64,000 bases of DNA, taken from Lytechinus pictus. Its lineage: Eukaryota. The position numbers and the translations under genes were made by a program. The stretch covers positions 9,424,001 through 9,488,000 of the forward strand of contig NC_087256.1 in the NCBI RefSeq assembly GCF_037042905.1, read 5' to 3'. The notes beneath the pieces are model-generated. The model did not search any database and was not told the DNA's origin. It was given only the letters and a program-made list of their open reading frames with translations. The stretch's first letter is position 1. Every line of letters starts with the position of its first letter. This document shows positions 1,167 through 60,763 of this stretch, piece by piece.

Positions 1167-14118
<12,952 letters not shown>

Positions 14119-38304: not shown

Positions 38305-41300
38305 ATGATGCACTCATTCTGCGTTCTCACCGTCTTGCTGTCGGCACTTATGCCGTGTCTATCGGCCTGGGCACCACTCTACCGTACCGCCGACAAAGCA
38401 CCAAACAGCTACATTATAGTGCTAAAGGTGACGTTTCAAACATTCCCATAGCTCTACGTTTAACATAGGAATTTAATTATGCAATTTTAATGATCAGATT
38501 CAAAATAGTTTTGGCTTAATGTAGCAAGTGTATTACAGTGAATGTTGAGGCGATAAGCAACCATCAAACAAAAATGGAACTCTATCTTCTTAGGTGGATC
38601 TTAAATCGTTATCCATTGACTTTAAGCAACGTCTGATAATATTTTAAGTCGTTGCATCAATTTACTCTGAATGATGAACTTATTTGCACTGGGCAGCATT
38701 ATGTATGGTCCAATCAAGTTCAATAGATACCATAACGCCAAGATAATGGCATATTGGGGGAAGTTCGAATTTCGTACCACAACAAAAACGACATGTGTAT
38801 TTGATTTTTCAAATAACAATAGGATGTTTAGTTAAATAAGTTATAATGCTATTTCAATATTCTTTCTCTTTTCAACATCCCCTGATATTCATAACTCATT
38901 CATCATTTTTTTGTTTATTGATNNNNNNNNNNNNNNNNNNNNNNNNNNNNNNNNNNNNNNNNNNNNNNNNNNNNNNNNNNNNNNNNNNNNNNNNNNNNNN
39001 NNNNNNNNNNNNNNNNNNNNNNNNNNNNNNNNNNNNNNNNNNNNNNNNNNNNNNNNNNNNNNNNTCCTATCCTTCTTCTTTCTTCTTCTTCCTCCTCCTT
39101 CTTTTTCTCTTTCTTCTTCTTCTTCTTCATCATCTTCATCTTCCTTTACTTATTCTTCCTCTTTTTATCTTTAATCTACTTTGTAGGAAGGGGTTGACGT
39201 AGATGAAATAACCTCCTCTTTTGTTACCACGGCAACTGCATCCGGCCTATCTTTTGATGTTACCCACAAGTATAGATCCATCTTAAATGGATTCTCTGTG
39301 ACTCTGCGTAACGAGGAACTCCTATCATTGGTAACTAAATTCAAATGTAGTCATTAGACTTATTTAAGCATTAGCTAGGTTCACCTATATAATTTTACAA
39401 AAATTTAATATATTAGAATTTCTCCAGTTTTATCAAATGAACGAACGACTCATTATAACTTCAAGACAAAGATTGAAAAGAGTGAAATGTAAATTTTCTA
39501 TTAAAAAATGTTATATTTTGTCTATGAATCATATTCAGTATTTGCCATAATTATAGTTCTGTTGCAAGAATTCTCATGAATCCTCCAAGTAGTCCCTCAA
39601 AAAATATAATCTTCACTCAGTGATTGTATTGTGACATTTATTATGTATGAATATCATCTGTCAGGTATGTGGTTGGGTATGTACCAAGGGCACACTTTAC
39701 TTTCTCAAAGTAATATAATTATCTTGCATCCACTGGTGCATGAATGGGGTGGTGCGGGGCTTGGGTCACTCGCCCCACCAAAAGAGTTCCGCGACTGAGA
39801 ATAAAAAGGAGAAATTAAAAGATAAAGAAGAGGGGTGACATAAAAGACTATTTCTGAATGTTATGTCAAAAGCTATTTCATTTAAAAGAAGTAAAGACTT
39901 TTGCTGTCTCACGGCAATTTGGTTGTTTTTGTTTTGTTGTTTCATACGCCATGTTCTACCCATTCAATTCTTATTTTAACTCTGTGCTCAACTGCTGGCA
40001 TTTTTCGTTAGATTCGCTCGCACGAATCTGTTCGATATGTGGAGGAGGATGGCATGGCGTACATTGACGAGGCAACTTGGGGTTTGGATCGAATCGATCA
40101 GCGGAATTTACCTTTGGACGATTCTTACATCCCTTTTGGTAAGACAATCTAGATTTAAGGAGATGTTTCCATATTCGATCAATATTTAAAACTTGGATTT
40201 TCAGAGCAATGGCATAACACGAATAGGCTCGTATTGTCCGAAATATGTTTTTCTATCAAATGGCAACAAGTGACATAATAACACAAATAGAGTTTTAATG
40301 AGCTTGTACTTGATATCTTGTTCTGTGCGAATGTTCAGAGAGAGAGAAAGAAAAATCCTGTTTTGAGTTATACGGTTGGTCAACGGATCGTACCTTGGTG
40401 TCTAAGTAAATGACAGAAACATAATTTGTGTGTTTTACAGCTTCCTTTTGTCGAAGTGTGGACAGTGTCGTAATGTGTATACTTTATATTATCCATACAT
40501 TTTGGTTGATGTTTAAGCATTATAAAAATTATATTTTACTATACCTTCTTTTATTACAAAATACAATTCTTGTTAAAGTTTAGATTGATGTTGTTTTCCC
40601 CCCAATAGCAAATGGAGAAGGGGCACATGTGTATATTATAGATACCGGACTCATGACCACTCACACCGAGTTTGAGGACAGGGGGACATTTGCTTATGAC
40701 GCAACAAATAGAGAGATCGTACGTATATGATTGATAAATGAATATAATCAATTTTATTAGTCTTATTTTATCTTGTTTTATTCTAAAGTGGAACATAGAT
40801 TTTTAAAATGTATCTTAACAATATACTACGTTCTGAGTGACAACATCTCACCACATTGAAAATTTTCAGATAAAAATGATGTAATACACGTACATGTGGA
40901 TCGTAGTTATGAAATTTATTTCGGTTATCAAATTAGCAAACAAGCCTATCAGAAGGTTTTACAAACTTTTGTGATTATGGCTAGATTAGGTGAAGCATCT
41001 GCTCTCTTCTCACGCTTTGAGATATCGGGAATCTGTATAGGAGGAATGCCACTTAAATCGTTCATTATTCGAAATCTATCTAAGCTGATTAAGTTGAAAC
41101 AAGTACATAGCATGTATAATCATACTGTAACAACTGTTTATGTAATGGGAAAAAAACTTTTCATTGTTCTTTATACTTACAAGTGCATGTAACTATAAAT
41201 GATCCTCATTTCGTTTCATAGTAACAAACCTAATTTGTATTGGCACCTCGTTACTCTGTGATAACTTGCTCTTTTATTGAAATGAAAAAAAAAACTTTCT

Positions 41301-44300
41301 TTGTTGAAGTGAAAAGTTTATTTTCCTTTCAACAAACAAATTTTCATTTTCATTTCAAAATCAAAAGAGCAAATTATTATACAGTAACGAGATGCCAATA
41401 CAAATTAATATCCGAGGCCCTATGGATATGCTGGTGTACCGACTCAAGACGGACTAAAGCTATTTTCATTGACATATCATCGTTTGGTTTAGAGTCGGTT
41501 ATGCTTCAGTCAAAACAACGAAACCGACTCCAAACCGACCGATGGTATGTTGAAGATTGAAGATAACGTAGTAGTTTCAATCCGTGTGGAGTCGGTTACT
41601 GGTTAGTTGAATTGATTGCAGTATGAGTGACAGGAGAGAGCCTAAAAAGTCAATTGAATGAATGGTTGTGTGTTGCAGGGCACTGGGACGGACTGTAATG
41701 GCCATGGGACCCACTGCGCTGGGACAGCAGCAGGAAAAGACTACGGTGTAGCACCAAAAGCCATGGTCTATGGTGTCAGGGTTCTAGGATGCCAGGGATC
41801 TGGAGCTTGGTCTGGAATCATTGATGGTGAGCTTGTATACAAATAATACACAACATCGAGAGTACTATAAGGAATTACACACACGTGATATATATATGGA
41901 TCAGTTCTAACTCTCCCTTGGCATTTAATACCGAGGGCGTTTTGACGGTCACGGTTTTAGAAGTACTAAGCCTATGTAATAGTATTCGAATTCCCGAGCA
42001 AAATTATATGTATTATGCAGGTGTAGGTTTTATAGATTTTTATATTGTTATTTGATAAACCGCCCTCATCTAAAGACATAACCGCTCAATTGTCATTTAT
42101 AGTGACTGGTCACGTGATAGACTTCAGCAAATTATTTGATTGGGATCCACGTCACCCTTTTTTTTATTAATATCAAAGTAGAGGTCTGTGGCGCACTCGT
42201 GGCCGCATGATCAAAGGTGCCTGGCGACACATGTGAAAGCCCGGGGTTCTGTTCCCTGATCCCCCTTCCCTTGACCAATGCATTTATCATAAGCCTACAT
42301 TGCTCTAATGCTCTTTTATTCAAAATGAAGTGAAATTTGTGCAGGCATTGTTGATACCAACGTATGCACGTATTTGTTTGGTGGCTGTCCCTTTTAATGC
42401 ACTCGAGCTTGACTTCGCCCAGAGGCAAATGTTGGAGAGCGCCATCTAAAAAAACACCGAATACATTGGATCATAGGTGATTTTTGAAGGACACCATGTA
42501 CTGTGTTTAAACAAATTACATCCATTGAGCCACAAAGCCTCAAATTCACCTCTCAGACATATTACTTGTTGCTTTGTCAGGCAATTCCCAAGCATGTCTC
42601 CCAGTTCTGGGGCCCATTTCATACAGAGTTACAGCTGCCATTATGGCAACTACCACGGCAACATGGCTCAGCAGCCAATCAAAATCAAGGTTACCATGGT
42701 AGTTGCCATAATTACAGAGTTACAACAGTTGCAACTCTTTATGAAACGGGCCCCAGATGCGAGTGGGTTTTATTTTCCTTAGTTTTGCAATGTCACGTGT
42801 ACATATTGTGTCAACTTGATTATTACCTTTTAATGGAGTAAGCCAGCTTTAAAGCGGATCTTCTTAAAGAAGCAGGCCTGGAATCACATATTCCCAGAAA
42901 TACAAATAAAATAAGGCCACCGCACACCTTACGACTGTTCGCGATCCGATTTTGGAACAAATCGCGTTTTGCTCATTTTCTGAAAATGTGAATGGAACAT
43001 ATCATTTTATTTGAGATTAAAATAAATTGAAAGAATACTTATATAACCATTTTAAAAGATTGCTAGCCTTTATTTTGATGTAAAGGCCAAATTAGTTTCA
43101 AATCGTAGCCAATCGTACGACTGCTATGACGTCATTACGACTAGATATTAAATTCGCTTTTATTCTAAGAAGGATGATAGCATAGTCACAAGTTTGAACA
43201 TAGGTATTCGTACGATGATTTAGAACATTACACAGTAAGATATTCCAAGTCTCAATATTAGCATCAAAGGTCAAATTCTACTACATTTATTCTGAAATCG
43301 GGTCGCAGATCAATCGTAAGGTGTGCGGTCGCCTTTATATGCCCCTTAAAAATGATTACAGGGGTATATATTGAGTAATTATACATTAAATCATATGAAC
43401 AGCTTCTTAGGTCTATGGGAGGATCTCCTCCCTCGAACTTACCGAGATACCGTACGCCAGTACACCACCACTATCCCTCTCCGAGAACATCATCGTACAG
43501 ATCACCATCATCATCATTACTACCACTTAAAGTCTTCATTCTTTTAAGGAATTTCTAAATGAACGAAACACTGTTTGGCTTATAACGCATCAGTCTCTGG
43601 AATTATTTTGTTCTTTCTCCGCCTTTCGGTCTGTATAGGAATGGATTGGGTAGCGAGTAATGGTAACCGACCTGCTGTAGCCTCCATGTCTCTCAGCGGT
43701 CCTGCGGATGGGACTGCTGTTGATGAAGCTGTAGCCAATATGGTGGCTGCAGGTGTTACGTTGACCGTCTCAGCTGGGAACAACAACTATGATGCTTGTC
43801 AGCGCATGCCAACTAGAGCACCGGAGGTAAAGTAATTCTTGATTCGCTACGAAATTATATATAATAAAGCAAGAAAAACAATACTCAATCTTGCCGATGG
43901 CTATATAGATAAATCTTCCAATATAAGCCTCGAATTCGGCAAAGTTAAGTGAGTTAGCCACCACATATCCGAACATATCCATCTCGTACTTGTTTGACCA
44001 TATTCTTCTCATTTAAGTGGTCTGTCGCACAAACGACACCTTGTTATATTGGTCGGACCATGGTTGTAGTAGGTCTGACAGACTCGGTTTAATTTGTTGC
44101 AAATTTAAGGGAGGTCGTATAAATCTGGAAATGAAAGGAAACATTATACAATTTTGTTTTCGAAAAGACGAACACATTTACTGTCCAAGTTTCCCCTATG
44201 CCTGTTTCACATATGGCGCAATCAATTGAAACTCAGTTGTCTGCCTAATTTAGATGCCTTTGTCTCTGAGGCATTCTTTTAATTACTCCAATAAAATCAC

Positions 44301-45637
44301 AATTCACATCGTGTCCAGGCGCCATCGAGCAACACCATGATAGAACTACTTTATTTTTTAAGATCAACTTTCAGAGTCGTTTCGAGGTACCGGTGTCATT
44401 GATTTGGAGGTGATAGGAATCAAGGAAGCAAGATCTTGGTTTACTCTCGAAGATCTTTTAATATGAGTGACAGACAGCTATTTACAAGCATATCCAAATT
44501 ATGGGCATGGTGGAAGAGTTAAGATGTTTATTTTTTATACTGGTTTATACTCCTCCCGTCCTCCTTCCAGGATCACAATCATTGCCAGGAGATTAATCGC
44601 CAAATAAAATAAACCATACTTCCTTTTATAATGGTTCCTACAGGCTATCACAGTTGGAGCCACCGAGAAAGACGACGCGAGGGCGTCGTTTTCCAACTAC
44701 GGCGGATGCGTCAATATCTTCGCCCCTGGACGATCCGTCGTTAGTGCGGGCATCGGTTCAGATACCGAGTATACCTCCAAGAGTGGAACCAGTATGTCAA
44801 CGCCTCATGTCGCAGGTGAGTCGTTGATATATGCATTATAGAGGCTCGAGGAGCTATTACTTGTTTTGCACATGACTCCATGCCATGTACTTATATAAAA
44901 TGAAAGGAATGAGATCCCAAGTGTTGTTGATGATGTCCAAATAACGTGAGACTGTGTTTCCGACGTAATGGCATGTTACATATCACCACTGGCTATTGAT
45001 ATAATAAAGTGCATTTAAAGCCTCTAATAAGTGATTCAATCGAAGATCAAGATCTCATGGAAATTTGTTTTTACATAGTTTGCTGTAAGAATGAACCCAG
45101 TCTATAGACTGTAAAATTTTCGTAATTGATTTTATATAATTCAAAAGAGAATGGAATTACCTTTTGTTTCATTATAAATTTCTAATAATCCCCCATTAAG
45201 AAAATGATGGCAAGTAAGGTATATTATACAAAAATGTTTATAAAACACTTTCGTCCACTACCGCAAGATCATTATATCAACATTCCAAAAGTGGCACAAT
45301 ATTTTTTAAAACCACTTTACAACTGACTCTCTATATCCGTGTTGAACAATTAAAGTCAGATGCCAGGCGCAGAGTTGCCTACCACTTCGTTAAAACGACG
45401 ACCCTGCCTTCGGCATGTTCCTGATGTTCGGAGGGTTACACTCCAAAAAATAAATATTTTCCAATGAAATGATTTGATTTATCTCAACCATCAGGTGCAG
45501 CTGCTTTGTATCTTGGCGAGAACCCATCCCTGACACCGCTCCAAGTCCGCAGCGTACTATCCAATGGAGCAACTAAAGACTGTGTCTCTGACCCGATGGG
45601 CTCACCCAATTTACTCCTCTACGTGCCAAACCAGTAA
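38305..45637 (+). CDS. Secreted subtilisin-like serine protease, S8A proteinase K/aqualysin type, paralog 2 (~384 aa, 8 exons)
   Basis: Exons 38305-38427, 39187-39330, 40012-40138, 40609-40718, 41679-41826, 43639-43826, 44644-44815, 45495-45637. GT-AG introns, same phases as paralog 1. Signal peptide; I9 prodomain ([17 protein letters not shown]); [39 protein letters not shown]; ends [11 protein letters not shown]. Confidence 0.93.
38923..39064. other. Assembly gap (N run), followed by a (TCT/CCT)n microsatellite to ~39145
   Basis: Run of n, then the trinucleotide repeat. Confidence 1.
42190..42370 (+). mobile_element. Decayed tRNA-derived SINE
   Basis: cgtggccgcatgatcaaaggtgcctggc.a.acatgtgaaagcccggggttc matches the SINE head at 35005-35081. 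Confidence 0.5.
42607..42756. mobile_element. Palindromic MITE (CWG-flanked, Harbinger-like)
   Basis: ctggggcccatttcatacagagttaca ... tgcaactctttatgaaacgggccccag. Confidence 0.75.
42915..43333. mobile_element. PIF/Harbinger-like MITE
   Basis: TIRs ggccaccgcacaccttacga ... tcgtaaggtgtgcggtcgcc; a partial second copy lies at 9680-10000. Confidence 0.75.
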
Positions 45638-53145: not shown

Positions 53146-55048
53146 ATGGCGGCTAACAGCACTGACCTGAATACCTGGTATACTGCCAGTCAGGAATGGA
53201 CTCATGAAACAGCAAGTGAGGAGTACGCCTTTGATTTCAAACAGAGGATAGGCGTTTCTGTTATTTACTGTCTCATTGTGTTAGTAGGTGTCACAGGNNN
53301 NNNNNNNNNNNNNNNNNNNNNNNNNNNNNNNNNNNNNNNNNNNNNNNNNNNNNNNNNNNNNNNNNNNNNNNNNNNNNNNNNNNNNNNNNNNNNNNNNNNN
53401 NNNNNNNNNNNNNNNNNNNNNNNNNNNNNNNNNNNNNNNNNNNNNNNNNNNNNNNNNNNGAGTGCAGCTCTGGGGAACTCTGATGCTAAGCTGACCATTA
53501 TTCTCTTTCCTCATTTTTTCCACAACATATCTGAATAAAAAGAGTTGGCAAATTGACTTCAAAATGTATGTTTGTATTTTTTGGACGGAAAATCAATAAA
53601 AAATAATATAATCTAGATTTGATAACAGGAAAGTTTATCATTCCTTGAAAAAAAATAAATGACCCTTCAAAAATTTAAATTTGAATACTTTGGTGGGTGC
53701 ATGACGTGATATGCTTTCTTATTTGGATATCGGCCGTTATTATGCTTATCGCAGTTTAGAAAATAAACGTAATTTAGACATCTTATATCAGTTTTAAAGA
53801 ATATTTCTTTGTTGTTCTTGCATTATTCCAATTGTCTTTATATTCAACAAAAATACTTTCAGCAGACTTGAAGTTTAAAGAATGATTTTTGAAAAAACAT
53901 TGCCCTCTAGGCTAAATATTTTTAAATGAGTGTATTTGTTAACAAAAAATAGCTTGGCATTCATGACGAGAACAATCTTCTTGACTTTTGAAACAGGAAA
54001 TGCTTGCGTCATCTTGGCTGTACTGTTCTCAAGAAAGCTTCACACCCCCACCAACATCCTGGTGGTAAATCTCAGTGTAACCGACTTTATTACCTGTTGG
54101 TCTCTTCTCATCCAAATCGTCGTTCTCTTGAACTCAGACCATGTCCTCAGGTTGGTTCCGCGTCCTCTGTGCCTCCTGGCTAGCGGAGTCACCTTCGTAG
54201 GAACTACCTGTAGTCTGATGACGCTGACACTGATTGCCTTCATGCGTTGGTACGTCATAACCCACAGCATCAGAGGTCATACAGGACTCCACACTACTAG
54301 GAAGGTTGCAACAATGGTAGTTTTTGTGTGGACTACCTCGTTGATCGTATCATTGCTTCCACCCGGTCTAGGAATAGGAACCCTGGGTTATAGTATCACC
54401 TATAAGCAATGTTGTACCGTAGATGATAATCTTATAGTCAAATATTACAGCATGGTGCAAGGCTGCGGGTCCTTCATCCTTGTGATGCTTGCCGTTTACT
54501 TTTACACTTCTATATTCTTATTCGTTTGCAAGAATGACAGGAAGTTTACACAGAGGTTTAGCCATGGGAACGACTCATGTCGTGTCAATGAATTAAACTC
54601 TGACTTAAAGGAAGGATCTAAGACAGAGGGGGATACACATTTTCCCACTCGCAGTCTTTCCTATATGGTGGAAAATGGGCATCATCAACAAGATCAAAGC
54701 GAGACAGAGCGTCGAATGGTGGAGCAATTTAGGAAGCGGGAGATAAAGTTGACAAAGAACTTATTTGTGGTGTTCTTCATTTTTGTGGTGTGTTTAGTTC
54801 CTTTCTCCATAAGCCTTGCCATTCCTGGTGGAAGCATCGTCAATATCTACTTCGCTGTCGTGGTATATTGTAACTCCTGTGTCAATCCCTTAATATACTG
54901 CCTAAAACACGACCAGTTCAAAGAGGTTTTGAGGCCATTGTTGAGATGCAGGTGGTCCAAAATTCCGCAGCCCACACAATTCATCAGGCACCTGTTTCCT
55001 TCAGATCAACATTCAGAAATTAGCAACATTTATTCATTATCAGGATAA
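53146..55048 (+). CDS. Rhodopsin-like (class A) orphan GPCR, paralog 2 (~400 aa, 2 exons)
   Basis: Exon 1 53146-53296 (gccATGG; MAANSTDLN...KQRIGVSVIYCLIVLVGVTG; 151 nt as in paralog 1; donor cut off by the N gap). Exon 2 53997-55048 with GNACV, NLSVTD, AFMRW, CLVP, NPLIY. Confidence 0.9.
53298..53459. other. Assembly gap (N run)
   Basis: Run of n inside the GPCR2 intron. Confidence 1.
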
Positions 55049-55913: not shown

Positions 55914-58900
55914 TCAGGATTCATTGGGGACATAGAGAAGAAGATTTTCGGAATCGTGCAACTCGGTGACTTTGTCTCTGCTAGCTGTTTCTAGGATGAC
56001 GTCACGAACTTCATTTGGTGATAGGTCAGGATTCAAGCCAAGATGGACTGCAACAACACCTGCCAAAATGAGAAGTTCAACCAATATGAATTGGTGTTAG
56101 TAGTAAAGTGTTAGTGGAAAGTAAGACAAATCGGGCTCTTTCTCTTAATAGCCTTTCCATATGGAAGAGGGTAGCCGACAAATGCCAGTGACAGCCATCT
56201 CTGTCTTCTTTTTGACGTACGTAATTCTTGATATCAAAATTGATTTACCGATATATAGGCAACAGACCTAATAGCTTTTCAAGTTATAGGAAAACATTCA
56301 AATATAAGTAATACCACTGAAATGAGAGTGGATTTCAATTCTTTTGAACATGTGCATACAACAGAGTCTGATTCCACCTGGTAGCGGAGGTGATTTATTT
56401 CCCCCAAGAAAGTTAGGATGCTTGTAAGCAAACAACCAGGGAACGGAAGGCTCGAGACCCTCTCTGTTGGACCTCTTGTATTGAGGACATGTGTCTTATC
56501 AAAGGAAACCAGCGCACCAAGTGAGAATGAAACCTCGGCCAACGGATTGATTAGAAAGTCAAGGGTGATTATAATACAAAAGTTATAATTCAAGATTTTA
56601 AATCATTTATAACGAACCTGCTACATGAGGACATGCCATGCTGGTTCCGCTCAGCGATCGATATCCGTCGTCAGATCGGTAGTCTGCGCTCAGAATGCGA
56701 TGCCCGGGAGCAAAGATATCCACGCATGCGCCCCAGTTTGAAAAGTAGACCCTGGCATCGTCATCCTGGATCGCACCGACTGTGATTGCCTTTAGAATTG
56801 AAACAAACAAAATATGATAATTATTTTTATGTGATTATAAGATTAATTACACTCTAGAAACAAATCAGTCAAAATGACTAGTTAATAGGGTCAGCTGGGT
56901 GCAGCTGTTATTCTAGTCATATTTGACTATTTTCTAGTCGTATTTTACAAGAGCAGAGTTATTTCTGACTAGAATATTAATTTGTCAGAAATGTGACTGT
57001 CATATCAGTTGCACCCAGGTGACTACTTGTCTAGTCAATTTGACTGATTTGTTTTAAGAGTGTAGGCAATCTAGCAATATAGATTTGTAATATTTCCCCT
57101 GAATGAGTCGTTGATAATCAATTACTATTCCTCCACACAATCTACTGTTCCCTGTATGGAGTAAGATAATTGACCTATGTGTTTATCACTTTTTTAGGAC
57201 GGTTCCCTTTTATTACACCTTCTAAGCTCCGTAGTTTATCATCTGCCATAATAAACAATCGGCAAATCAATTAGGATGGTTCTCTTGATCTTGAGGAATC
57301 ATAACAGTTGATTTTAGAGGTCTAGGCAACTTTGAAAAAAAAATTGTTCTTAGATATGGAGGAAACATGAAGAAGATCTTTCAACAATACCTCAGGTGCT
57401 CTGGCGGGAGAAGCGCGGCATGCATCGTAGTCGCTATTACCAGCCGCTACCACCACCGTCACACCTGCCCTGTGAAGGTTTCCCAGTGACTCGTCTACAG
57501 AACGAAGTCCACCGCCTCCAAGAGACATGCTAGCAACGGCTGGACGAATACCATTGACGGCAACCCAGTCCATACCTAAAGGGACAGTGTAAACAAATGA
57601 GTAACTGACTTGGAAAATAGGGAAAGAGCGAGATATAGAGAGTAAGCAAACTGAACTTGAGGTGATTGTGTAAAAACTTATAAACAACAATCGATGACCA
57701 TTTTAGAGTCGACATACAAGTCATGTCGATCCGTCACAGAGCTTTCGATTTACATGACAGATGTTTCTACGACCATAAAATGACCATAACCATCTGCACA
57801 TTTGAAATTTCGTCGGATCCTCCCGTTTTACAACTGTTTCCGGGATGAATCGACGCTACGAGGCGTTTTGCTGAAAACGACAACATAATAAAGAGTTTTT
57901 GGGTCACGTGATAATGTTTTCAATGCGTCAATGCGAGTAAGTCTTCATCCTAAAAATCTAAAAAAAAAAAATCCCCAGTGTATCATCCGAAGCAGATTAG
58001 TCTTCGGAGTTGGGAAGACGTGCCTTTGGTTCATCGTGACGCGAAAAATCTCCGTAACTTGAAGGACATGTAGTAGTCAACTTGAAGAGGGAAATCATTG
58101 GACTTCTGTGCAATAATGCACTTTAATTGATATGGTATAAAATACTGACCATCGATAATGGCAGACCACGAGCCGTATCCATAACATCCAAGAACCCGCA
58201 CGGCATATACTTTGGCGGCCTTGGCAACCCCGTATCGTTTGCCTGCGATTGTACCTGCACAATGAGTGCCATGTCCCTGGCAGTCACCTTCGTTCCCCTG
58301 CCGATCAAGAATATAAGTTGTCGGTATGAATAGAGAAAGCATCCTATATTTTGTGGGTAAATTACCCAACACTCACCGTCAATGACCGCTGACCATGACC
58401 CAGACCCATAACAACCAAGAACCCGTACGGCGTAGACTTTAGCAGCTTTGGCAACTCCGTACCGTTTACCTGCGATCGTGCCGGCACAGTGGGTCCCATG
58501 CCCTTGACAATCACCATCGTTGCCCTGTCATTTATGGAAGAGTGGATATTTTCGGTTATGACCTTTAGACAAACTCACCATCGATTACAGATGATGATGA
58601 ACCGGACCCGTAACACCCAAGAACTCTGACGGCATACACCTTTGCACCCTTGGCCACACCGTACCTTTTACCCGCTATAGTCCCTGCACAGTGAGTCCCG
58701 TGACCTTGACAATCGCCATCATTACCCTATTATAGAATAGTCATGATATCCATTGATGTTATTTATGTCGACGTAATTTCAGTAACACGTTTGGACATAC
58801 TGAATAACAATCCTGGAATTTTAAATAAAAAAATGCCGATCTTTAGTATCGAATGGTTCTAGCCGCATCCTGACCATGGTATTTTCTATGTAGTTTGAAA

Positions 58901-60604
58901 AAGTTGAAGATCTATGTGAATTACCCCCCCCCCTCTATATTTTAGATAATAATTCACCTCAAGGAAACTGACTTTATGTTTATTATATCATTTCCTGAAA
59001 TGAATTTTTTCTGGAACATAATTTTTTCTAGAATCTTTATCAACTCTTAAGACATGAAAGATGTCTATGATATATAAGGTACTTACGATAGCGTAGTTCA
59101 TGGCGTCATAGACGAATTCTGCTCTGCCCTCAAAGTCCTCATGGGTTGTTCTGATTCCAGTATCAAGGACGTATACATTCACACCGCTGCCATTACCTAT
59201 CAAGATTATATGGTTATGGAGGAGTCAGTAAAAAATACACCAAACAAAATACAACGCAGCGATCTTACCACCGATGTTTATCATGAACATCAAGGAATAA
59301 AAGTAATGTCGAACATGATTTTTTGAAATGTTTGGCAACAAAAACAACAGCTACCCATCCCAGACTGGTATAATAAGAAAACCTGCAGACATCAAGGTAA
59401 TTTTGAATCATTTCAAAACGACAATGAAAGATTGAATGGGTATATCTTACCGACTGGAGTATAACTATCATCGAGAGGAAGATCTCTTTGGTTGATCCTG
59501 TCAAGTCCCCAGATCTCTGTAGTGTGTGCTAGGCCATCTTCTTCCACGTACTTCACAGAGGGGTGGGCTCGCACCTGTGTTGGTTAGGGTGTGCGTGGGA
59601 GTGTGAGTGTGTGTGTGGGGATGTAAGTGGATTGGGTGAGCGTGTATGTGTGTAAGTACGGATTTGTGCGTGGCAAAAAATACAGGTAAGTGTGTGTGGG
59701 GGTAGGGGTGGGTGAATATAAGGGTGACAGAGTGTTTGGGGTGTGTGGAGGGAGAAACAGTCAGAGAGTGTGTGTGAGAGAGATGTAGAGCTTCGATGTA
59801 AGGCAAAGTCGTTATTCTTTTTATGCTTCATACCTCGCTTCCTGTCATTAATTATTTTGCATCTGTGCCAAAAAAGGGGTGTGTGGGTTGAATTCATTGC
59901 AACAATGATTTAAAATTTCATGTGCCAGTCTAACAGGAAAAAATACATTATTATTATTGAAATGCTACCCATTGAGAGGGTTAAAAGCGCAACATGACCT
60001 GTTTTGTTTTGCCAATGTTCAAGCATTTTGGCCTAAATGATTGATTATGTTTCAGTTTAAATTGATGAAATATATAACAAAAACTCTTACCACTGCTAAG
60101 GCCTCCTTTGATAAAGATATTGCAAATCCATTGAGGACTCTGTTGTACTCTTTCAGAGGGTTGTTAAATGTTATACTTTTCAGCCGGGATTCTTCATGAA
60201 GAGATTGTAGAACGTTTGGAAGCACAGCATTCCTCTGCCAGGTGAAAGACAATTTTATAGATTTATCAAATCAGATTTACATAATTTCAAATGATAATCG
60301 TGCTTTTATACATTTCAATTTTTTCGGTAAAAAGTCACCCAGATACTAATAACATATTCTCAATAAGGTATATGATTGTTCTAATATCCGAACGACACAA
60401 AAAGAGACTATCTAATAATCTAATATTATGCTTTTCGTCTACTTATCGGAAATACTTATATATTTCCCCAGTACTTACCTTCAGGACTACGATGTACTGC
60501 TCCTTAATGGCTTCTCGTGTTTTGAATAAAGGAGCTCGACGAGCCGCCACAACCGCACCAGATAGCAAGATGGAGAATGAGAGGATGGAGACAATGCACC
60601 GCAT
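55914..60604 (-). CDS. Secreted subtilisin-like serine protease, S8A proteinase K/aqualysin type, paralog 3 (~384 aa; exon 5 present in three alternative copies)
   Basis: Exons in transcript order: 60479-60604, 60091-60234, 59451-59574, 59087-59196, [58579-58726 | 58377-58524 | 58150-58297], 57391-57575, 56618-56789, 55914-56059. Same phases as paralogs 1 and 2. Signal peptide [20 protein letters not shown]; [55 protein letters not shown]; ends [10 protein letters not shown]. Confidence 0.93.
56848..57064. mobile_element. TA|CACT...AGTG|TA palindromic MITE in intron 6 of protease 3
   Basis: tacactctagaaacaaatcagtcaaaatgactag ... ctagtcaatttgactgatttgttttaagagtgta. Confidence 0.8.
58150..58297 (-). 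CDS. Protease 3 alternative exon 5C (catalytic His exon)
   Basis: cggcag|[50 protein letters not shown]|gtcagt; 148 nt, phase 0 in, phase 1 out. Confidence 0.9.
58377..58524 (-). CDS. Protease 3 alternative exon 5B (catalytic His exon)
   Basis: tgacag|[50 protein letters not shown]|gtgagt; 148 nt, phase 0 in, phase 1 out; absent from the ORF track. Confidence 0.9.
58579..58726 (-). CDS. Protease 3 alternative exon 5A (catalytic His exon)
   Basis: taatag|[50 protein letters not shown]|gtgagt; 148 nt, phase 0 in, phase 1 out; absent from the ORF track. Confidence 0.9.
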
Positions 60605-60763
60605 GATTGACGTCATCGGGTTAATCTATATAATATTAATGAATAAAATGTTGATGAAGTTAGTAACAAAGAGTACTAAAAATCATTCGAGACATGGATT
60701 CTTCCATATATTATCGATCAGGTATCTGTGTACAGGTTGTTGGATGGTCTTCTCCAATTGTTT

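Follow-up and report, generated by a model that had tools for sequence, protein, structure and literature searches.

A mutually exclusive cassette of three exons in a secreted sea urchin subtilase and its probable effect on substrate preference

We analyzed a 64,000-nt stretch of the Lytechinus pictus genome (hereafter the window; NC_087256.1, forward-strand positions 9,424,001 to 9,488,000), and coordinates below are counted from its first letter. The minus strand of the window carries, at 55914..60616, a gene with eight exon positions, a CDS of 1167 nt, and a precursor of 388 aa. The fifth position is occupied by three alternative copies (5A, 5B, and 5C), and translation of the spliced CDS shows that the frame stays open across the gene with any one of them. 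The features are the following, with residues 87 to 136 given in subtilisin numbering and the kind of evidence in brackets.

60616-60479, minus strand: exon 1 (spliced open frame)
60234-60091, minus strand: exon 2 (spliced open frame)
59574-59451, minus strand: exon 3 (spliced open frame; junction 3-4 confirmed by RNA)
59196-59087, minus strand: exon 4, constant, with the catalytic Asp in VLDTGI (RNA: joined to 5A, 5B, or 5C)
58726-58579, minus strand: exon 5A, isoform X3, with G87, S101, S104, S106, V107 (translation and RNA junctions)
58586..58606, minus strand: codons 41-47 of 5A, residues 101-107, SGSSSSV (translation and alignment)
58525..58578, minus strand: spacer 5A-5B, 54 nt, GT...AG (69 nt in the Strongylocentrotus purpuratus counterpart)
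58524-58377, minus strand: exon 5B, isoform X1, with A87, S101, W104, A106, V107 (translation and RNA junctions)
58384..58404, minus strand: codons 41-47 of 5B, residues 101-107, SGSWSAV (translation and alignment)
58298..58376, minus strand: spacer 5B-5C, 79 nt, GT...AG (78 nt in the S. purpuratus counterpart)
58297-58150, minus strand: exon 5C, isoform X2, with E at codon 3, A87, Y101, W104, A106, I107 (translation and RNA junctions)
58157..58177, minus strand: codons 41-47 of 5C, residues 101-107, YGSWSAI (translation and alignment)
57575-57391, minus strand: exon 6, constant, carrying the S1/S4 wall 132-136 as SLGGG and the oxyanion Asn within AAGN (RNA: joined from 5A, 5B, or 5C)
56789-56618, minus strand: exon 7, with the catalytic Ser (spliced open frame)
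56059-55914, minus strand: exon 8 (spliced open frame)

The gene product is a secreted peptidase S8A of the proteinase K/aqualysin subfamily. Its precursor is a pre-pro subtilase made of a predicted signal peptide (judged from the hydrophobic N-terminus), an I9 propeptide, and an S8 domain. The three translations from the window are identical to the L. pictus RefSeq "aqualysin-1-like" proteins XP_054765966.2, 967.2, and 968.2 (isoforms X1, X2, and X3), and these predicted isozymes are alike at 382 of their 388 residues. The best match is aqualysin I (phmmer, 4dzt, E = 1e-87; 56% identity). The residues D147, H181, S333, and N268 occupy invariant columns in an alignment of 88 sequences, with the motifs DTG, HGTH, and GTSMA in the order Asp-His-Ser. 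An AF2 model of the isoform X1 precursor, built on this alignment, has a pLDDT of 90.8, and Foldseek matches it to 4dzt (TMt 0.94) and to proteinase K (TMt 0.89). The propeptide corresponds to PF05922, precomputed on identical or near-identical RefSeq proteins, and has a beta-alpha-beta fold in the model (residues 36-112). The likeness to aqualysin I and proteinase K (PDB 4dzt, 1ic6, and the 3PRK complex) covers the triad, the oxyanion Asn, the I9 propeptide, and the segments 100-104 and 132-136, and the Cys at the aqualysin-type disulfide positions are invariant. In contrast to these relatives, the urchin gene is an animal (echinoid) gene with introns, and the exon that codes for the catalytic His and the 100-107 segment is present in three copies that serve as alternatives.

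All three copies of exon 5 measure 148 nt, or 49 full codons and one extra nucleotide; they begin in phase 0, and every copy is flanked by its own AG acceptor and GT donor. Because 148 is not divisible by 3, both double inclusion and skipping shift the frame and lead to an early stop: two or three copies in the mRNA give a stop at codon 226, 4-5 codons into the second copy, and the loss of exon 5 gives one at codon 199. The RNA data comprised L. pictus contigs (data set X1, 99% identity) and L. variegatus-like contigs and raw reads (data sets X9 and X20). All six junctions (4-5A, 4-5B, 4-5C, 5A-6, 5B-6, and 5C-6) are present in the two Lytechinus species. In data set X20, 5A is joined by 27 junction reads to exon 4 and by 58 to exon 6, 5B by 135 to exon 6, and 5C by 12 (+7) to exon 4 and 21 to exon 6; contigs with 5A or 5C also occur in X1 and X9. 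At a threshold of 3 reads, the junction reads of X20, which number more than 200, include neither joints between two copies nor 4-6 joints; contigs cannot show the absence of double inclusion, and NMD could hide rare transcripts of this kind. The introns have zero read depth, and no read has the 54-nt or the 79-nt spacer spliced out. Hence, 5A, 5B, and 5C form a mutually exclusive cassette from which each mRNA takes exactly one copy. The shortness of the spacers (54 and 79 nt) probably disfavors splicing between neighboring copies. Exons 2 and 3 of alpha-tropomyosin are the type case of mutually exclusive exons enforced by steric hindrance. The urchin cassette resembles them in its very short spacers (54/79 nt, and 69/78 nt in S. 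purpuratus) and in the frame incompatibility of double inclusion, and by analogy a steric mechanism may operate here too.

The share of transcripts is about 54-63% for 5B, 23-27% for 5A, and 10-23% for 5C, so that about 37-46% of transcripts carry 5A or 5C. These proportions are alike in three runs and hence give no sign of regulated switching. They fit a constitutive mixture, but equally a weak functional difference between the forms. Two further possibilities in the RNA data were considered and rejected. A loose end beside exon 4 in X20, a candidate paralog exon, equals in our reading the start of L. variegatus 5B once the synonymous variants reported below are taken into account. A paralogous origin of the 5C reads is contradicted by the paralog itself, which has N100-W101, a variant absent among the reads.

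The products XP_054765966/7/8 and LOC578252 X1-X3 had already been predicted in RefSeq, but by automatic annotation only, which says nothing on a mutually exclusive cassette or on differences at S3/S4. We found no description of the cassette in the literature on mutually exclusive exons, subtilisin/peptidase, Strongylocentrotus, and sea-urchin aqualysin. The RNA data also correct the annotation of L. variegatus: its RefSeq entries have the 5B form alone in the protein cluster examined, and its RNA shows that all three forms are expressed.

Exon 5 codes for the catalytic His, for the strand behind it, and for the 100-107 segment. Six of its 49 codons differ between the copies (in the order 5A/5B/5C): codon 3 (D/D/E), 27 (G/A/A), 41 (S/S/Y), 44 (S/W/W), 46 (S/A/A), and 47 (V/V/I). 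A preliminary description of this DNA had counted six variable positions, four of them in what are codons 41-47, and had given the variants as S101/S104/V107, S101/W104/V107, and Y101/W104/I107; the translations of 5A, 5B, and 5C agree on each point. It had also placed the variable residues at subtilisin 100-107, and our alignment leads to the same place. Residues 5-48 of the exon align with proteinase K 65-108 without a gap, and the alignment with BPN' ends at exon residue 48, which is residue 108. It follows from the gapless alignment that codon 40 is G100 and that codons 41, 44, 46, and 47 are residues 101, 104, 106, and 107. The strings for residues 100-107 of BPN' and proteinase K quoted in that description agree with the sequences of these enzymes. 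In the AF2 model, the region consists of a short strand (residues 213-215, i.e., 101-103) followed by a helix (216-229).

In proteinase K, segments 100-104 and 132-136 sandwich P4-P1 of the substrate, Ser101 is a residue of the S3 site, 104 forms a side and the flexible lid of S4, and 107 lies at its bottom (PMC1890553). By homology, codons 41, 44, and 47 are thus predicted to lie on the ligand-contacting surface as residues 101, 104, and 107. The earlier assignment of the variation to S3/S4 is supported for these three positions by the alignment and the structural work (PMC1890553). Residue 106 is not recognized as part of a pocket, and the sites at codons 3 and 27 lie outside the cleft. The V107I change is, moreover, conservative. 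The view that exon choice spares the triad and the S1 pocket holds, since the residues concerned are in constant exons or identical across copies: Asp in exon 4, His in all three copies, Asn and the S1 walls in exon 6, and Ser in exon 7. Experiments in subtilisin BPN' have shown that Y104A, V107I (with L135V), and S101K alter the P4 and P3/P5 preferences (PMC7935941), and the work of Rheinnecker on engineered subsite variants is cited there. These variants concern the same positions 101, 104, and 107 as the urchin exons, with V107I being also a natural difference; as laboratory mutations in a bacterial enzyme, their effect sizes are not directly transferable. Bacterial enzymes have S, T, or N at 104 and S at 101, where the urchin has W104 and Y101 instead.

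The cassette is also found in S. purpuratus. There, LOC578252 (locus L004) has 5A-5B-5C in the same order, with spacers of 69 and 78 nt, and RefSeq isoforms X1-X3 of equal length. The copy-specific residues common to both genera are G87, S/T104, and S106 in 5A and Y101 and I107 in 5C; the D/E difference at codon 3 lacks such conservation, since 5C of S. purpuratus has D there. Within one species, the copies are 72-82% identical in nucleotides, those in the window 72-78%, and dS is mostly too saturated to compute. Orthologous copies of Lytechinus and S. purpuratus are 85-89% identical, with dS of 0.5-1.0 and dN of 0-0.018. For 5A these values are 89%, 0.52 (dS), and 0.018 (dN), and the amino acid sequence of 5B is identical (dN 0, dS 0.71). 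The dN/dS of 5A and 5C is about 0.02-0.035, and their frames and splice sites are intact in the two genera. Over the three copies, 1 of the 12 codons at residues 101, 104, 106, and 107 has changed between Lytechinus and S. purpuratus (S to T). All 35 variant sites in the RNA are synonymous, 18 of them within exon 5 copies. Judged by these substitution patterns, each copy is under purifying selection. An ML tree of the 148 nt resolves just the 5A pair (88/97) and the separate pair of a paralog, LOC585917 (100/100); the orthology of 5B and of 5C rests on pairwise identities and not on the tree.

Diadema setosum has a single exon 5, of the 5B type and with the same 100-107 segment. Going by this one exon, 5B is the ancestral type, and the comparison places the origin of the cassette after the Diadema split and before that of Lytechinus and Strongylocentrotus. 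When we used the 49 aa of 5A as a query for exon-sized ORFs in other echinoid assemblies, the only match was P0002; hence, the dating cannot be made finer than these two splits. Entries of Antedon and Ptychodera named "isoform X1/X2" were considered as instances of the same cassette and rejected, because their lengths differ.

Is the concentration of differences at 101-107 more than chance? If sites are chosen uniformly, the probability that at least 4 of 6 fall in some 7-residue window is 0.049, and it is 0.004 for the named 100-107 segment. The two values become 0.053 and 0.0066, respectively, when each site is weighted by its variability across the family. With the substitutions common to the two genera, 4 of 5 are inside the segment (P = 0.0017). 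As the segment was picked after the data had been seen, the honest P falls somewhere from about 0.05 to 0.005. The clustering is real, though by itself just moderately significant (around 0.05 as an unprejudiced scan); the conservation across species is the stronger evidence.

The reading that in our view probably holds is that of a mutually exclusive cassette in a secreted subtilase, giving three isozymes that likely differ in their P4/P3 preferences. Since the differences between the exons fall largely on residues that line the substrate groove as its wall, lid, and floor, one gene probably yields three specificities, i.e., by analogy, different cutting preferences. Each mRNA would, with its one 148-nt copy, determine the S3 site (101) and, in S4, one wall (100-104), the lid (104), and some of the floor (107). 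The ancestral and majority form 5B (S101, W104, V107) would place an aromatic lid on S4. In 5A, the lid would be lost (S/T104, with S106 and G87), leaving an S4 that is both more open and more polar and resembles that of bacterial enzymes of the aqualysin type. In 5C, the S3 site would gain an aromatic side chain through Y101, and I107 would make the S4 floor bulkier. The triad, the oxyanion hole, S1, and the second wall of S4 (132-136) are the same in all three forms. Along with three P4/P3 preferences, the isozymes would probably differ in how well they fit their own propeptide and inhibitors that resemble a substrate, and a mix of isozymes would broaden the cleavage range of the secreted enzymes. 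We infer in which direction and how far specificity would shift, as well as a digestive role.

Three other explanations have to be weighed. The variable segment might mainly tune maturation or control, through the fit in S4-S1 of the propeptide C-terminus or of an endogenous or dietary protein inhibitor, with consequences for activation kinetics, for stability, or for escape from inhibitors. We regard this as unlikely, if still worth serious attention. In the model, the last propeptide strand (residues 101-112) reaches a low-confidence linker (114-119) just before the mature N-terminus, as would be expected of a propeptide filling the cleft like a substrate; one propeptide is common to all isoforms, and mutations in the S4 cavity are noted to affect, in turn, how stable the catalytic site is (PMC7935941). 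However, the same residues would serve specificity too, so that nothing separates the two readings, the preliminary description had itself allowed for a change in inhibitor susceptibility, and the analysis identified no inhibitor partner. It is rather improbable that the copies are functionally equivalent, with drift tolerated at surface positions under loose constraint and a cassette kept without isoform-specific function. Codons 3, 27, 44, and 46 do belong to the positions that vary more within the family, V/I at 107 is a mild exchange, and the isoform ratios hardly change from run to run. Against this, the states at 87, 101, 104 (S/T vs. W), 106, and 107 were kept in S. purpuratus despite the dS of 0.5-1.0, with the single S to T change noted above. 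The copies agree at many positions that vary more in the family, the most variable ones in exon 5 (39, 29, 4, 21, and 20) being invariant among 5A, 5B, and 5C, and Y at 101 is rare (7 of 257 distinct family segments). Finally, that 5B alone works, 5A and 5C being decaying duplicates included by splicing noise, would suit its majority share and ancestral type, but is very hard to believe given the large share of 5A and 5C in the transcripts, their intact frames and splice sites with low dN/dS in two genera, and the exclusively synonymous RNA variants in them.

Returning to three isozymes with different preferences, a comparable arrangement exists in insect serpin-1, where alternative copies of exon 9 code for the reactive-centre loop, for example in Manduca sexta, Bombyx mori, and Cydia pomonella (PMC10671500). 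As is proposed for the urchin gene, tandem mutually exclusive copies alter recognition residues only and give several specificities per gene (PMC10671500). Yet serpin-1 swaps the bait loop of an inhibitor, whereas the urchin gene swaps the subsite wall of a protease along with its catalytic His; serpin-1 has 4-14 copies, and the urchin has three with far fewer differences (6 residues). Proteases as a rule gain new specificities through gene duplication; in this gene, alternative splicing would take that role inside the catalytic domain while the catalytic machinery is fixed. The cassette provides a natural minimal set of variants at the very positions targeted by engineers (three enzymes with six differences among them, of which four lie in residues 101-107), and its evolution is polarized, with the ancestral 5B state known from Diadema. 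Hence, it makes a clean system for the effects of the S4 lid and the S3 site on subtilase specificity, and for the enforcement of exclusive choice by short spacers.

On a wider reading, about which we are evenly divided, this would be the first described animal protease in which a conserved mutually exclusive cassette swaps half of the S4/S3 site plus the catalytic-His exon, giving isozymes with distinct P4/P3 preferences. Together with the duplication in LOC585917 and a tandem paralog, the exon would then be a recurrent hot-spot in the diversification of subtilases in echinoids, which might serve digestion in the alkaline gut of the larva. LOC585917 has its own, independent duplication of exon 5, whose copies vary at residues 89-91 and 99 and not at 101-107. 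As these vary elsewhere, the putative tuning of S3/S4 is specific to the cassette gene and not a rule of the family. The tandem paralog varies at residues 100/101.

The aqualysin-1-like subtilase gene on the minus strand carries three copies of exon 5, which a repeat search grouped into a single direct-repeat family with three members of ~160 nt (58141-58300, 58368-58527, and 58570-58729). Reverse-strand translation reproduced exactly the peptides given in the preliminary description, together with the six codons that vary between 5A/5B/5C: 3 (D/D/E), 27 (G/A/A), 41 (S/S/Y), 44 (S/W/W), 46 (S/A/A), and 47 (V/V/I). The nucleotide identity between copies is only 72-78%, and third codon positions carry 29-34 of the 33-41 differences in each pair. 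The exons are the following:

60616-60479, minus strand, exon 1
60234-60091, minus strand, exon 2
59574-59451, minus strand, exon 3
59196-59087, minus strand, exon 4
58726-58579, minus strand, exon 5A (148 nt, 49 open codons, phase 0, AG/GT bounded)
58524-58377, minus strand, exon 5B (148 nt, 49 open codons, phase 0, AG/GT bounded)
58297-58150, minus strand, exon 5C (148 nt, 49 open codons, phase 0, AG/GT bounded)
57575-57391, minus strand, exon 6
56789-56618, minus strand, exon 7
56059-55914, minus strand, exon 8

The joined coding sequence (1167 nt) is open with any single exon-5 copy. Joining two or three copies breaks the frame, with a stop at codon 226, and omitting all of them leads to a stop at codon 199. 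Intron 3 contains a GT/GTGTG-rich low-complexity tract (59580-59780, plus strand).

The product, of 388 aa, combines a hydrophobic N-terminus with an I9-type propeptide and an S8 domain. Its nearest solved structures by phmmer are aqualysin I (4dzt, E = 1e-87), a Meiothermus keratinase, Vibrio and Serratia proteinase K-like enzymes, and proteinase K. An AlphaFold model built from 88 homologues has a mean pLDDT of 90.8 and matches 4dzt with a TM of 0.94 at 56% identity. The translations are identical to the L. pictus RefSeq "aqualysin-1-like" isoforms X1 (5B), X2 (5C), and X3 (5A), i.e., the three isoforms are already predicted in RefSeq; our literature search found no description of the exon-5 cassette or of its S3/S4 pattern. 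Among the L. variegatus RefSeq proteins examined, the sole form is the 5B one (XP_041476915.1, record P0273), which starts four residues later.

In one L. pictus RNA run, the fraction of words sampled from 58140-58740 that is present is 0.57, near the ~0.62 estimated if all three exons and no intron were present. Four RNA runs were mapped onto 57300-59620, of which X32 (L. pictus) contributed no reads. In the other three, introns and spacers had zero depth, and exons 4 and 6 were each joined to 5C, 5B, and 5A. These joints came from contigs of X1 (L. pictus) and X9 (a second, L. variegatus-like Lytechinus) and from raw reads of X20 (also the second species), where exon 6 was joined to 5C by 21 reads, to 5B by 135, and to 5A by 58. 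No joint between two exon-5 copies or between exons 4 and 6 was found in this region at the listing threshold of at least 3 reads, although contigs cannot prove absence. The cassette behaves as mutually exclusive, and nonsense-mediated decay might mask rare double inclusion. Usage of 5C/5B/5A is ~10/63/27% in X20 from joint reads, and 19/58/23% in X1 and 23/54/23% in X9 from contig depth. The ratios are similar in the three runs, which speaks for constitutive production of a mixture and not for switching. The reads of the second species (X9, X20) contain all three forms, as opposed to the 5B form alone among the L. variegatus RefSeq proteins examined. Exon 4 shows nine synonymous variants in X20, at 30-60% of reads, which reflect either two haplotypes or mis-mapping from the tandem paralog, in which exon 4 codes for an identical peptide.

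It had been proposed that the differences between copies concentrate on the S3/S4 substrate-binding segment. Codons 5-48 align by phmmer without gaps to proteinase K residues 65-108, which places codons 41/44/46/47 at residues 101/104/106/107. The alignment to BPN' terminates with identical numbering, and both agree with the earlier mapping to segment 100-107. The model shows a short strand at residues 213-215 (101-103) and, after it, a helix (216-229). In proteinase K, segments 100-104 and 132-136 sandwich P4-P1, Ser101 is the S3-site residue with its side chain directed off the substrate-binding surface, the S4 side and flexible lid are made up by residue 104, and residues 96 and 107 form the S4 bottom (PMC1890553). 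In subtilisin BPN', Y104A enlarges S4, V107I combined with L135V alters the preference for Tyr or Phe at P4, and S101K raises kcat/KM ~8-fold on a target peptide with P3 Ser and P5 Glu (PMC7935941). The other S4 wall and S1 (SLGGG, AAGN) are encoded by exon 6, the catalytic Asp by exon 4, and the Ser by exon 7. Neither they nor the His differ between isoforms, and the triad and S1 pocket are unchanged, as had been anticipated.

Most likely, one gene gives three secreted isozymes, with differences confined to one S4 wall, the S4 lid, the S4 floor, and the S3 site as far as the substrate groove is concerned. W104 would provide 5B with an aromatic lid. This lid would be absent from 5A, which would be more polar and resembles bacterial aqualysin-type enzymes (GSGSTS, GSGSNS at the segment), and 5C would gain an aromatic residue at S3 together with more bulk on the pocket floor. 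From this we infer that the isoforms differ in P4/P3 preference, and therefore probably also in how well they fit the propeptide that they share and inhibitors that mimic a substrate. The alternative in which exon 5 controls maturation or inhibition instead of substrate choice cannot be separated from such tuning of specificity with the present data. A digestive role is plausible: an aqualysin-1-like gene is among the digestive-cell markers of Heliocidaris larvae (PMC11817407), and the larval urchin stomach is alkaline, at ~pH 9.1 (PMC4458843). The logic is the same as in exon 9 of insect serpin-1 (PMC10671500), but here it is the protease that varies, within its catalytic domain.

With uniform choice of sites, the probability that at least 4 of 6 differences fall in some 7-residue window is 0.049, and in residues 100-107 it is 0.004. 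Weighting by family variability, from 257 distinct segments, gives 0.053 and 0.0066. As the segment was picked with the data already in view, the clustering by itself counts as moderate evidence. A more telling point is that the most family-variable positions of exon 5 (39, 29, 4, 21, 20) do not differ among 5A/5B/5C. Few family members have Tyr at 101 (7/257 segments).

The S. purpuratus ortholog (LOC578252) has equal-length isoforms X1-X3 and the same 5A-5B-5C array and order, with spacers of 69 and 78 nt (54 and 79 nt in L. pictus). Its copies lie on the ortholog locus L004:

L004 13567-13714, S. purpuratus exon 5A
L004 13784-13931, S. purpuratus exon 5B
L004 14010-14157, S. purpuratus exon 5C

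Orthologous copies of the two genera are 85-89% identical in nucleotides, with dS of 0.52-0.98 and dN of 0-0.018; different copies are 72-82% identical, with dS mostly too saturated to compute. Both genera share G87 and S106 in 5A, where position 104 is small and polar (S in Lytechinus, T in Strongylocentrotus). The 5B peptides of the two are identical, and 5C keeps Y101 and I107. Only one copy-specific residue, D/E at codon 3, lacks conservation across the two genera. In the outgroup echinoid Diadema setosum, only one exon 5 lies between exons 4 and 6, with [10 protein letters not shown] in the 100-107 region, the sequence of which indicates that 5B retains the ancestral state, 5A and 5C being derived. 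Five substitutions are common to both genera, three on 5A (A87G, W104S/T, A106S) and two on 5C (S101Y, V107I), and four of the five lie in segment 100-107 (P = 0.0017). Neutral drift as the origin of the copy differences is contradicted by this conservation of copy-specific residues across genera. Each of the 35 sites at which RNA data of the other species or alleles vary is synonymous, and 18 lie within exon-5 copies. Together with the transcript joints of 5A and 5C and the low dN between orthologous copies, this contradicts a functional role of 5B alone.

The paralog LOC585917 has its own two copies of exon 5 (the His exon), ~650 nt apart (L005:5782-5929 and L005:6578-6725 at its S. purpuratus locus) and used in equal-length RefSeq isoforms X1 and X2 (L. 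pictus proteins P0293/P0175). They pair in the exon tree (100/100), hence this duplication is independent. The copies differ by Q/R two residues before the catalytic His, H/K-V/L-H/F at 89-91, and S/E at 99, with no differences at residues 101-107. As they vary elsewhere, S3/S4 tuning appears specific to the gene under study. Exon 5 of the tandem upstream paralog (L. pictus XP_063963520.1, S. purpuratus LOC578182) is 5C-like (records P0178, P0287, P0290, P0291), with no second copy within 400 nt upstream of it in Logan contig L001. Its residues are N100-W101 in Lytechinus and N100-Y101 or G100-Y101 in Strongylocentrotus models, a sequence pattern that again points to 100/101 as a putative diversification site.

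Two further S8 genes indicate that the window is part of a subtilase gene cluster:

8229-12719, plus strand, S8 proteinase K-like gene, single exon-5 equivalent with [14 protein letters not shown]
40608-44814, plus strand, S8 proteinase K-like gene, single exon-5 equivalent with [14 protein letters not shown]

An intronless ORF of 372 aa with 7TM/GPCR features (53930-55048, plus strand) lies a short way downstream of the protease gene and is oriented opposite to it. A 7tm_1 gene occupies the equivalent relative position in S. purpuratus (L004 17924-19691), hence synteny is conserved.
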